64,000 bases of DNA from Styela clava (GCF_964204865.1 NC_135255.1:1550001-1614000); one strand, 5' to 3'; shown: positions 15,201 through 21,200, counted from the stretch's first letter. Numbers and translations: made by a program. Notes: generated by a model not told the origin, from the letters alone.

Positions 15201-18200
15201 CTGCTCCTGGACAAGATGGTTGTTGTGATGTTTGTGATAGTAAGTACGAATTTACATTTTTGTTTTGACTTCCATTAAAGTTCATATTTCAATTTATAGA
15301 TGCATGAAAATTTTAAAATCTGAAATGTTTGTTGCATTTATCATAGCACCTATGGTATTTGACTTGTGCTTTTAATATTTTGCATATAGTTGTTTATTTT
15401 ACACAAAAATCAGCTTTGATAAATCAAAACGCAGCAATAATAAACACAAATCAACTATTTTCAGACTGTGAATATGAAAATAGAATATACCGAAATGGAA
15501 TAACATTCAAACCCAATGAGTGTCAGTCATGTGAATGTATTGATGGATCAGTCATGTGTCATGATACTGTTACAAACTGTGAACCTGTCAAATGTGCACA
15601 ACCTGTCAAACTTCCTGGGGAATGCTGTCCTACATGTTCTACAGAATGTCGAGAACACAAAGCTTTGGAATCCTGGGCAATGGATAAATGTCACAACTGC
15701 AGTTGTGTAGTAAGCCTTAATATCTATGGATAATATGATGATACACTGATAACATGTACTTCAAAATCCTAATATTGCATTGTTATCTTAAACATAGTCT
15801 TGACTAGTTTAAAAAATAAGTTTACAAAACTTATCATCTGTTTTCTCTGAGCCAATATGTATAATTTATGTGCATAACAATATGGGGCTGTACGATTTTA
15901 TCTTTTCGTTTCGGTTCTTGATCGTGATTGAAAAGCAAAAAAATTATTATATTGATTAACTTGGTGTAATGCATTTTAGGCGGATAGAATCATTTGCTCT
16001 CGAAATCAATGTCCTGTGCTTCAGTGCAGTCACCCGCGAACTGGTGCAGGAGATTGTTGTCCAAAATGTATGGGTTGTGAATATAAAGGAAAAAATTATC
16101 GTCATCAACAAAACTTCATGATTGATTCATGCAGTCAATGTAAATGTCGGGTGAATACATTTTCTTTATTTAAATTAATCTAGTTTTTACAGTAATTATC
16201 AATCGTGTTGTTCATGGCTTGGAGAATTAACATATATGTATATATATATATATATATGACTTGAAAACAGTACTCGAAACATTTTTAGTTTGGAAATGTC
16301 ATGTGCACAACACAACAATGCCCACCACTTAATTGTAAACATAAGGAGAAGCCTCCTGGTTCTTGTTGCTTGAGATGTAGAAAAGGTGAGTTTGTATTCC
16401 TGTTTCTAATGTTGAAGATATATTATGACATCATATTGCATGACATTTTGTCAGTATGCGAATGTATTTTACATGTGGTATTCATTAAGTTTGTTTATGA
16501 CTAACTTTTTACCAGCTTGAATTTTTGCATTACTGCATGTTTATTTCGATTTATAATTTGGAATGATTCATATAAACAGGATAGGATATATTTTGCTTCA
16601 GTATTATCATTTACCGGTATATCACTGAAATATGTGGTTGGGTGTTGAATCAATTTCTAGTATGTTGATATATCATTATAATACAGTTAGCTTGCTACAA
16701 CTGTGAATGACTGACAGCATAATTTATTTCATCATTTACTAACTCACACATAGGTATAAACTTTCCAGATTCTCATTCTGAACTCACTCTAGTTTTTCGT
16801 AACAAAGCAAGAACTAATGAAACTAAAATCAATGACTTCACACTCAACTCGGTTTTGAAGTCTGAGGAAAATAACAAAACTAGATTTGATCATAATCCGA
16901 AAACATATGTGGATGAATTGGATTCAAATAGTCTGACTATTCCTGAATATGATTATCAATATGAAGAATATGATTATAATGAGTTGGATGGTTTTAAAAG
17001 TGAAACTGATGAAGAATACAAAGATCCTCAATCAGTTTATCAAGAATATTTAAAATCTATTGAAAACATCAAATTACAAGTTGAAAATATTTCGGAGAAA
17101 AAGTTAGACCAGAGAAAAATCATTACTAACAATTCTTCATTAGTGAATATTACTGATGAAAGGAACGAATATACAGATGCTGAAGAATCTATCTCTAGTA
17201 ATTTTAGCTACTATTATGATTATGACTATGATTTTGATGAGTCACTTTTAGAAACCGATATTTTGAGTAAGATGGATTTGAATCTGGATGATTTGCTCTC
17301 TTCAGAGCATGAACCAATAAATCTTGAGGATTTTGATGACGATGCTCTATCAAAGACATTGATGAAAAATGAAGCAGAAAGCAAAACATTTCTGGCAAAA
17401 CCCGAGGAAGTAGATGTATTATATAGTAAAACCAACCAACGCATCGAGTTTGATTTTATTAATGAAGAATATCAACAAGACATGCCTGATCATATACCCA
17501 GGTCAAATCACAAAAGCAAGCATCATTCGCACAAAGTAAAGAATAATCGAAAGTTCAGAAAGAAATCTCATGATAAACCCTCCTTTAAAAAAAGTAGCAA
17601 TGATCAAGATTTAACTTCAAACAAAGACAAAGATAAAACTTCAACAGAACACATATATGATCATGATGATGAAATATATAATATTGAAAGTGATATCATT
17701 TATGCCGATGGTTATGATTTTGAAAGTGATTATACCACAGATGAAGTTACAAATTTAACTTAGGAAATACAATATTATCATAAAAAATTATTATTGGAAG
17801 CTATCTTGAATGGCTTCTATTTCTGGTCATATGGTGAAGGCCATGGTATTGTGAATACCATTAAACAATAGTATTTTGTCATACTTCAGTATTATGATTC
17901 GACATTTTTAAAATCACCTACCGTAATTGGAGCATTCACGTTATGAACTGTGTCATGACTTGTTAGCAAAACAACACATTTTAAGCAATCTGTAAATGTA
18001 TTTTGTAAGTTTTGAGGCTGAATTCTAAATAATTATGTGACTTAAATTAAGATATGCATTAATATATCATGTACAAACTGACCAAATTATAACGAATAAC
18101 AAATTCAGATTTAATCACATACAATTAGACTACTAACCACCTTACCACCATACTTACCACTATTAACTTCCTCGGCCTATGGTGTGTATAGGATTGATCT

Positions 18201-21200
18201 TTTCCTCAGATAGTTTAATAATAATTTGCAATGCTTCAGCTATTTCGTTTTGTTTAGTCTTTATTATGTTCTAATTTTTTGTCCTATATCTATTGTTCAT
18301 ATATTGTTGAATTAGGTGTCATGCTCTCGTTCATGTCTTGCCCATATAGCACTCAGGTGTTCCAATTTTGAGTAATTTATATACGAGTACAACTTGAGAA
18401 GGGTTGAATAAAATCAATTTATGTCATCTTTTATTTTTTGGTATTTGCACTATAATATTGTTTTTTTATCAATAAAACTATGTACAGCAATATAATATTA
18501 TTTATAGCATATCTATCTGTATTGTTCAAAATACTAATAGACTATGGGATTGTTATGACAGGTCGTACTCAAGTTAGAAATATTCTGCAGATATAGGATT
18601 TTGTAAATTATAGATGTTACATGGTCCTGAAAAGGTATTTTTAGAATGTTGGATGATATTCTTTTTTGGTTGAATTTTAAATGACTTTTAAAATCGTTCT
18701 CAGTTGAATTTTTTTTCTTTTCTTTCTGCATCATTCTCGTAATGTGGTGTGCCAATTTTGCATGGATGATGCATGTGTGCTCAAAAAAAAACGTCTTTCT
18801 AATCATTCATTGAACCATATATTCTGTTGACTGACTTAACTTTTAATAAAGTGAGATAGTGAGATTGAAAAACTCAAAATTTGAGATTGAAGGACCAGAG
18901 CTTGTAATAAGACTAATACCCATGTCCCATATCTTTGGTTGTTATATCTTTTTAAATTTTGTAAGTTATTGTGCATCCTCTTGCATGTACATTGATTCTA
19001 CAGTTTTGCATTTCACAAGTTTTTAAAATATTTTGATTTCCAATTTTTCAGCTTAATCAGTTCCTGCAAAAATTGAATTTTTGTAATATCTTTTCTTCTG
19101 TATGCATGATTTAATTTTGTTTGTAATCGTAACACACATTTTTTTTTTTTAATCATATTCGTGTTGCATCGATGTATGATTGATGACAACCAAAAGGTTG
19201 ACCGTCAGACAGACTTCTGTGGAAGTGAAGATAATGCCGAAATTCTTTTTGTAATCTAAAACTTTTTTCACGCTAAACATTATTCTGAGATTTGGAAGTT
19301 AAAAATTCAAAACTCTGTGCTAATATTTCAAAAATTCAATATTTTTGAAGTATCCAATAGTTGAATTTTTTTTATTGAAATTATTCATCAATTAAAGCAG
19401 AAATCATTATGACTTCACCTTTCCAAAACCTAGTGAGGTTTCACTGTTGATTCTTCTTTTGAATTCTGATTTTCTCCTTTCTTAAAACCTGCATGACTGC
19501 TTTGCTATGGTGTAACATCTTTTTTATAGGTTGTGAGTATGAAGGTATTTTTTATGACAATGGCGTATCATTCAAGACTCAAAACAACCCATGTCTAAAC
19601 TGTACATGTCTGGTGAGTTTTTTGCTTAATAAATGGTTATTTTAGATATCAATCTTATTCCTCACAGTAAATTTGTTTCTCAATTATATTTTGGGCAAAT
19701 GTTTATTGAGGCCCTAAATTATTTTCTCATTTCAACCCTTGAATAATATCATATGTTAGGTTTTGTTTAGTATTCTTTACAATGAAATTAATACAGAATA
19801 GTCAACTGTTTTCTTTTAAATCTTTCCACACAAACGTTAGCTATTTATTCTAATTTTAGCTATATTTATATAAAAGATAATAAAATTATATATATCACAA
19901 TGTTGACATACTGACACATTCATCACAAATCTAGAATTGCCTGGTTTGTATGTAATTACAATGGAAATTTCAAGCACTTACAATATTTACATGTGCCATT
20001 TATTTTGCTATCTATATTCAATGATTCATTTTCATGTTTTAATTAAAAATGGTATACCAATAAATTTGTTTGATTGAAGTCATGGTATCTGTATTCACTC
20101 TCTGTAGTACTACAAAGAGTGGAAGAGTGATTTTCATGAAGCAGCAAAATATTGAAAAATGATATTTGTTAGACAAACTTGCAATTGAAGTAATTTTTAA
20201 ATAAGATTTCATTTATTTATGCATGAAAAAATTATCTTATTGGGTTTTAATTAAGCATGCATCTAACTTATATGCCAGAATGGACAACCAAGTTGCATTC
20301 GACAGACCTGTGAAAGAGTTTCTTGTTCAAGGCCAGTTGTTCCTGAAGGGGAATGTTGCCCACGCTGTGCAACTTGTCAAGTGGGTTCAACAGTCTTCAG
20401 TGAAGGGCAAATGTGGACAAGTAGAGATCGATGTAAAAAATGTGTTTGTCAGGTGTATATATATATGGATTTATTTCAATTTAACTACATGTTTTATTTT
20501 GCTAACAATACCGGAATTTGGCAATATTAATATAATATCTCAAAGATGATGCTATAATAATATTGGTAATCTTGAACTTGCAGAATTACCAATCATTGAA
20601 AAGTGTTTCTATATATAAAGAGAAAGGGGATAAGAAAGAGTAATAAAATTAGAATAAATTCGAACATTTTTGTATAAATACTTCACTTTTAATATCGCCC
20701 ATTCTGATGAAACAAATTTCTGAAGAAAGCAATCTTAAATCTATGAATATTCCATTTATTCATCAATTTTTTCGTGCCTGATTTAGTTGGTTAATATCCC
20801 TCATTCTAAAATTAATTGATTTCTAGGCTGGTGAACAAATATGTAGAAAAATCATTCCTTGCCGAAGTGATTGCTCTAATGGAGTTGTTCATAGAGGCCA
20901 GTGTTGTCCAGATTGCTCTCAGTGTTCGTATCATGGAAAGATTTTTCAACATTTGGAACCATTCAGTGATCCATATGATGCATGCCAAAGATGCTCATGC
21001 CAGGTTGAATGTTTTGTCATAATACTACTAAAAGTATAATGTTGCTGAAATGTCAATTCAACTTCGATGGTGTTTCAGTTAAATAGGCTATGTGTAAAAT
21101 TTAGCAATAATCCCATATACCGTATATGCTCGTTTTAACGCCCGATCTTGATTAAGGGCCCGTTTGAATAGCCGCCCGTGTGGACAGAACATAAAAATAA

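Follow-up and report, generated by a model that had tools for sequence, protein, structure and literature searches.

Host gene and the intron between its VWC repeats

This study concerns an open frame of ~1 kb hidden in an intron of a large multidomain gene of Styela clava. The gene lies in a 64,000-nucleotide (nt) stretch of DNA (NC_135255.1:1550001-1614000), which was analysed whole and is called the window; all positions are counted from its first letter. The window has a G+C content of 32.7% and contains zero N. A single gene-like series of exons runs on the + strand from the window start to ~39.4 kb. It encodes on that strand, in this order, a tyrosinase-like domain, EGF, Kunitz, a second tyrosinase-like domain, four VWC, a further 27 VWC, VWD, C8, and TIL. 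In the exons flanking the hidden frame and downstream of it, Pfam E-values range from 1e-13 to 5e-7 for VWC (PF00093), and are 6e-11 for VWD, 1e-17 for C8, and 5e-8 for TIL. An earlier note on this DNA had counted four VWC domains on one side of the intron and 27 on the other. The same numbers are obtained by counting VWC second halves (motif CCxxC), with four before 16385 and 27 after 19530.

A long fused form, in which the tyrosinase-like and the kielin-like halves belong to one protein, is independently plausible at this locus, as suggested by the one-strand order of the Pfam domains. It also agrees with a report of spiralian tyrosinase sequences of >3,000 amino acids (aa) with kielin/chordin-like domains (PMC11667028). 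Compared by description only, those sequences resemble the present gene in combining tyrosinase and kielin/chordin-like parts in one predicted protein of >3,000 aa, but they are treated in that report merely as outliers.

Introns of the VWC array lie mostly in mid-domain, after the C-x-C motif, and are in phase 0. A few are found at domain boundaries and are in phase 1 (15240-15464, 24237-25088, and 16386-19529). The last of these, which separates VWC domains 4 and 5 and holds the hidden frame, is 3,144 nt long; the description of it as the longest intron is true within the VWC array. Splice sites were scored with matrices trained on 14 donors and 13 acceptors of this gene, fixed by the VWC motif pattern, and because this training set is small the scores are rough. 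The borders of the intron are as follows (a slash marks the splice junction).

16289-16385, + strand: constitutive exon before the intron, encoding the second half of VWC domain 4; phase 0 at its start, phase 1 at its end; acceptor tttttag/TTTGGA
16386-16391, + strand: strong 5' splice site aag/GTGAGT (aaaag/GTGAGT after 16385); 8.5 bits leave-one-out, 99.2th percentile of window GT
19528-19529, + strand: strong 3' splice site of the next VWC exon, tcttttttatag/GT (ttttatag/GT before 19530); 99.6th percentile of window AG
19530-19612, + strand: constitutive exon after the intron, encoding the first half of VWC domain 5; phase 1 at its start, phase 0 at its end; translation begins CEYEG...

The translation of the upstream exon ends with ...CCLRCRKG, which is the end of VWC 4.

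A single-copy coding frame inside the intron

The intron contains an open frame of 346 codons on the + strand (16723-17763). Its 1,010 nt from 16754, which the earlier note had singled out, are indeed open through the TAG at 17761-63, and comprise two features.

16754-17760, + strand: coding part of the hidden exon; 2 nt finishing a Gly codon, followed by 335 codons
17761-17763, + strand: in-frame stop codon TAG

This is coding sequence. The frame is the longest in the 64-kb window, where the runner-up has 173 codons. When the intron was shuffled 500 times with its dinucleotides preserved, the longest open frame averaged 84 codons with a maximum of 171, and in 1,000 shuffles of the frame's own composition it averaged 71 with a maximum of 161. 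Each of the remaining five frames across the same stretch is interrupted by 19 to 69 stops. Codon-position periodicity is strong, with G making up 29%, 7%, and 11% of positions 1, 2, and 3. A chance frame is ruled out by the shuffles (346 versus at most 171 codons) and, together with the stops in the other frames and the periodicity, they identify the 346 codons as coding. By eye, the frame also stays open beyond the TAG at 17761 for ~38 further codons (17764-17877), to a TAG near 17878. From base composition, the chance of this second run is estimated at ~5%. Its residues turn hydrophobic, and it is therefore probably due to chance.

The first Met of the frame is at codon 173 (17272). Because codons 1-172 are devoid of Met, the frame requires an upstream exon, which rules out an independent single-exon gene. 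Likewise, a nested cistron trans-spliced so as to start at Met173 was rejected because 172 open codons would stay unexplained. The frame thus lies within a host intron, on the same strand and without its own start, and the nearest upstream donor, at 16385, is compatible with it in phase.

Among the findings that, according to the earlier note, would undo its reading is that the frame belongs to a multicopy repeat. The reading survives this check: the hidden exon is found in one place in the 377-Mb genome, with 100% identity, and so is the remaining intron (1.77 kb). There is no paralogue of the exon in its own genome, the best other match at the protein level having E = 0.36. A multicopy repeat or transposon frame is therefore ruled out, as there are no further DNA or protein copies in the genome. 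The sole tandem repeat detected by TRF is a 26-nt micro-repeat with a period of 6 nt (17213-17238), which lies within codons for YDYDYD. No Rfam family was found, and the hidden exon has no Pfam match. Since its translation in addition contains no Cys, the exon is not a VWC module.

The same stretch could in principle be an unexpressed relic, i.e. a former exon or a captured coding fragment that is spliced out with the intron. The weak acceptors described below, the lack of a homologue in any search, and the lack of a genomic paralogue would all fit a relic. On the other hand, at 29% G+C an unconstrained frame meets a stop every ~13 codons, and this one is intact. Because 346 codons have remained open, a relic would need an extremely recent origin, and we consider this explanation very improbable.

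Proposed splicing and polyadenylation of the hidden exon

The donor at 16385 and the acceptors at 16754 and 19530 had been described as all being in intron phase 1 at a VWC domain boundary, and this is confirmed by the sequence. Joining 16385 to 16754 and joining 16385 to 19530 each completes a Gly codon (G/GT). In addition to the acceptor of the earlier note, there is a second candidate 15 nt (five codons) downstream, at 16769, and the products of the two would differ by five residues. The features at the start of the hidden exon are as follows.

16738-16744, + strand: TACTAAC box resembling a branch point, with putative use as such
16752-16753, + strand: candidate 3' splice site AG, acatag/GT, exon start 16754, phase 1, Gly; -1.2 bits, 62.6th percentile of AG
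16767-16768, + strand: second candidate 3' splice site, tttccag/AT, exon start 16769, phase 1, G/AT giving Asp; -4.1 bits, 40.2th percentile

The distance from the TACTAAC box to the AG is 25 nt for the site at 16767-68 and 10 nt for the site at 16752-53, and acceptor 16769 is better placed relative to the box than acceptor 16754. Both scores fall inside the range displayed by real acceptors of the gene (-7.5 to 10.3 bits leave-one-out). A further AG, before 16687, scores 9.6 bits, but its use would give G/TT AGC TTG CTA CAA CTG TGA, i.e. a tail of six residues, with the long frame untranslated. It was provisionally treated as matrix noise.

The in-frame stop had been reported to be followed by AATAAA signals. 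These hexamers are present, at 18407, 18471, and 18845. Downstream of the stop they occur at 1.70 per kb and across the whole window at 1.58 per kb, and are thus not enriched. Because this density equals the window background, the hexamers alone are no evidence for a terminal exon. What stands of the claim is the first hexamer, located 646 nt past the stop, which is accompanied by a strong downstream element.

18407-18450, + strand: most promising candidate poly(A) site, AATAAA with the U/GU-rich sequence ttttattttttggtatttg downstream; a downstream element that strong is found at 8 of the 101 AATAAA in the window
18471-18476, + strand: second AATAAA, with a weaker downstream element

The strengths of the sites form a pattern. 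The outer donor and acceptor of the intron are at the 99th percentile, the acceptors of the hidden exon are at the 40th to 63rd, and there is no good inner donor. Because the sites are thus strong on the outside and weak on the inside, and a single poly(A) site is well formed, the intron bears the signature expected of a skipped terminal exon. We therefore favor the interpretation in which the 1-kb frame would belong to the host gene and serve as its alternative terminal exon. It is unproven, but it is the best single reading of the sequence, and we would give it a little less than an even chance.

In such a scheme, donor 16385 would by default be joined to acceptor 19530, giving the long protein of the kielin/chordin-like type. 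Alternatively, splicing would use one of the two weak acceptors (16754 or 16769), translation would end at 17761, and the transcript would be cleaved and polyadenylated within the intron, most likely near 18430. The short product would retain the two tyrosinase-like domains and four VWC, lose the 27 VWC, VWD, C8, and TIL, and gain a tail of 331 to 336 residues. We infer the use of the exon, its terminal position, its regulated use, and any role of its tail. Of the earlier claim that there are two products made via an alternative last exon, what holds is that the exon is coding, single-copy, on the same strand, phase-compatible, and provided with its own stop; the weakness of its acceptors and the background density of AATAAA do not favor it.

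Several other findings also weigh against a terminal exon, in addition to the lack of AATAAA enrichment. The acceptors of the hidden exon are weak according to the in-gene matrix, which is noisy with 13 training sites. The phase match means little, since the frame is rich in Asp and Glu and 45% of its AG (29 of 64) fall in register with phase 1, making the match worth only a factor of ~2. When 1.84 billion representative proteins were searched by phmmer, regardless of their length, there were zero matches at E <= 0.001, and no relative of the exon was found in metagenome contigs or the ESM Atlas. Because no relative was found anywhere searched, conservation of the exon cannot serve as support. 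The exon would therefore be an orphan, or would have diverged too fast for recognition, as may happen to a disordered and compositionally biased sequence. Finally, the frame contains phase-1 donors, albeit weak ones, and large internal exons encoding disordered linkers are common in big secreted matrix proteins.

These last two points are at the heart of a different explanation, in which the frame would be an internal in-frame exon, constitutive or cassette. It would be entered at 16754 or 16769, left near 17710 or 17725, and joined to 19530, giving one long protein with a disordered acidic linker of ~320 residues between VWC 4 and VWC 5. In a variant, the donor at 17266 would define a 513-nt cassette alongside terminal use. 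Ten phase-1 GT sites lie inside the frame, none scoring >3.0 bits. The candidates are as follows.

17267-17272, + strand: candidate internal phase-1 donor tga/GTAAGA, which would make 16754-17266 an in-frame cassette of 513 nt; 2.0 bits, 70th percentile of GT
17711-17731, + strand: weak phase-1 donor candidates atg/GTTATG after 17710 (957 nt) and aaa/GTGATT after 17725 (972 nt); 2.5 and 3.0 bits

The exons that would end at 17266, 17710, and 17725 (513, 957, and 972 nt) are all multiples of three. Although these donors do not exceed 3.0 bits and are at the 70th to 79th percentile of window GT, three accepted donors of the gene are equally weak (-1.6, 0.9, and 1.8 bits, versus 4.0-10.2 bits for the other 11 of the 14 training donors; leave-one-out). 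The stop lies just 12 codons past 17725, which is a chance distance at an estimated ~7.5% stops per codon based on base composition. However, the donor at 17725 lacks both the G at position -1 and the G at +5, of which all 14 training donors carry at least one. The donor at 17266 is better formed, but on its own it leaves 165 open codons unexplained. In addition, an exon of ~1 kb would have two weak splice sites. An internal exon is the rival that we take most seriously, even if we judge it fairly unlikely.

Two products might also come from separate transcription units, with no isoform switch. In a tandem version, a gene with the tyrosinase-like domains and four VWC would end constitutively with the acidic exon, and a kielin-like gene would have its signal-peptide exon in ~18480-19529, joined to 19530. 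In a nested version, a same-strand gene would begin with a small exon within 16386-16753. Such arrangements would likewise agree with an intron in phase 1 at the edge of a domain, since introns of this kind are also typical of the border where a signal peptide gives way to the first domain, or the last domain to a tail. Scanning 17764-19529 yielded, as best candidate, a hydrophobic segment that starts with ATG and ends at a phase-1 GT (18480-18561), but its donor is poor (-1.5 bits) and equal candidates are expected by chance at 0.61 per 1.77 kb on this strand. A separate downstream gene was rejected because this best first exon is no better than chance. For the nested version, the candidates are short and unconvincing. 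A very small possible first exon lies at 16632-16659 (MWLGVESIS, cta/GTATGT, phase 1), but it encodes no signal peptide and is one of five such ATG-to-GT segments in 368 nt (16386-16753). Moreover, the Gly split over 16385/19530 restores the junction CC..C..G-CEY.G, which is unsplit in neighbouring exons, and fused spiralian proteins of >3,000 aa with tyrosinase and kielin/chordin-like parts are in the literature (PMC11667028). Both versions taken together, we regard separate units as unlikely, more so than an internal exon. A small share of the probability is assigned to none of the readings considered here.

The predicted tail and its relation to known proteins

If the hidden exon is terminal as we propose, its translation would form a C-terminal tail. 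These 335 residues include 79 Asp+Glu versus 40 Lys+Arg, for an isoelectric point of 4.5, and 22 Tyr, but 0 Cys and 0 Trp. There are eight N-x-S/T sequons. Of the 22 Tyr, 15 have at least three acidic and at most one basic residue within five positions, and they are grouped in three clusters. A single-sequence AlphaFold model of the tail has a mean predicted local distance difference test score (pLDDT) of 46, and the tail is predicted to be mostly disordered. Its features are as follows.

16948-16977, + strand: first cluster of Tyr in acidic context
17026-17127, + strand: single long predicted helix (residues 91-124), the only structured element predicted with confidence; residues 91-110 (two 10-residue blocks) have a mean pLDDT of 88-89
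17209-17229, + strand: second cluster of Tyr in acidic context, overlapping the 6-nt-period micro-repeat at 17213-17238
17488-17589, + strand: basic His/Lys/Arg block; residues 241-270 have a net charge of +8
17656-17733, + strand: third cluster of Tyr in acidic context

In secreted proteins, tyrosylprotein sulfotransferase recognizes Tyr in acidic contexts of this kind. The same 15 of 22 Tyr have neighbours of the type expected for sulfation, with several acidic and few basic residues. The Tyr of the tail may thus be sulfated or, given the tyrosinase-like domains in the same chain, converted to dihydroxyphenylalanine (DOPA). Loci with Sulfotransfer_3 (PF13469) are many in the genome, which shows compatibility only. 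A tandem cluster of Sulfotransfer_3 gene fragments occupies C2:20150168-20225458 (~75 kb), and more loci are found on C16 and C4.

Small leucine-rich proteoglycans, such as fibromodulin, osteoadherin, and lumican, have Tyr-sulfated acidic N-terminal regions. The tail resembles these regions in its clusters of Tyr among Asp and Glu residues, in a matrix protein that would likewise be secreted, and its 15 Tyr in acidic context are putative sulfation sites. There is no sequence homology and, in contrast to these proteins, the acidic region here is C-terminal and much longer, and includes a basic His/Lys block.

The opposition between a structural and a signalling or polymerising form, put forward in the earlier note, is pure conjecture. 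A more elaborate version would be a switch of enzyme plus substrate. The short form would combine the two tyrosinase-like domains with the Cys-free tail and its three dense Tyr-in-acid clusters. This tail would be made, by DOPA formation through its own or neighbouring tyrosinase domains or by sulfation in the Golgi, into an adhesive, mineral-binding, or heparin-like polyanion that binds bone morphogenetic proteins (BMP), and the long form, with its 27 VWC, VWD, C8, and TIL, would be polymerising or BMP-modulating, with the choice made by intronic polyadenylation at a lineage-specific orphan exon. We consider this combination quite improbable, though somewhat less so than a relic.

Last exons defined by intronic polyadenylation are known from the secreted and membrane forms of the IgM heavy chain, from soluble VEGFR1 (sFLT1), and from calcitonin/CGRP. 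As would be the case here, a terminal exon inside an intron, equipped with a stop and a poly(A) site, competes with splicing across that intron and yields a truncated protein with a private C-terminal tail. Those systems differ in that they were shown by RNA and protein, whereas the present one is predicted from DNA, and the private tail is here unusually long (~335 residues).

VWC arrays followed by VWD are characteristic of KCP, Xenopus Kielin, and BMPER/Crossveinless-2. The half of the gene downstream of the intron is similarly built, with 27 VWC-type repeats followed by VWD with a GDPH motif, C8, and TIL. The GDPH motif lies at 36609-36620 in the VWD domain of the long form, and we take it to be the autocatalytic cleavage motif of BMPER/Crossveinless-2 and gel-forming mucins. 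To our knowledge, neither KCP nor BMPER has been described with an alternative tail that is acidic and rich in Tyr. The gene also differs from these in its large N-terminal half, which contains the two tyrosinase-like domains, EGF, Kunitz, and unnamed G[FY][DN] repeats.

Within this N-terminal half, the two tyrosinase central domains are Pfam-confirmed at 611-874, 2208-2438, 10219-10362, and 11983-12171. Their translations have WNR at one copper-site position and H-W in place of H-H at another. The EGF (E = 2e-8) and Kunitz/BPTI (E = 1e-12) domains are located between them, at 5635-6116. A motif of eight residues, G[FY][DN]xxG[FY][DN], recurs many times in the exons between and after the tyrosinase-like domains (2790-13536), for example at 3778-3912, 4249-4317, 6453-6506, 7573-7662, 12933-12956, and 13372-13512. 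Five frames with this motif were scanned (3751-3966, 4249-4431, 7477-7995, 12921-13100, and 13294-13536), and none has a Pfam match.

Downstream of the VWC gene, a minisatellite-like array (44251-51210) displays, on both strands, repeated open frames with ...CMPHLGGRI[CG]GHLRY.... It is followed by a myosin heavy-chain gene on the + strand (57500-64000), which leaves the window and has Myosin_head matches with E down to 4e-31.

An alternative last exon is an ordinary and well-known mechanism, and the value of the present case rests on the particular product predicted. Because public protein sets contain nothing similar to the exon, homology-based gene predictors would miss it. If our proposal on its use is correct, a single locus would encode two very different secreted proteins, namely a giant kielin-like VWC/VWD protein and a truncated one in which the tyrosinase/VWC part ends in a polyanionic tail rich in Tyr. 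If true, this would be a case of a large orphan coding exon recruited by an old multidomain gene, and it would bear on the diversification of spiralian adhesive, shell, or BMP-modulating matrix proteins.

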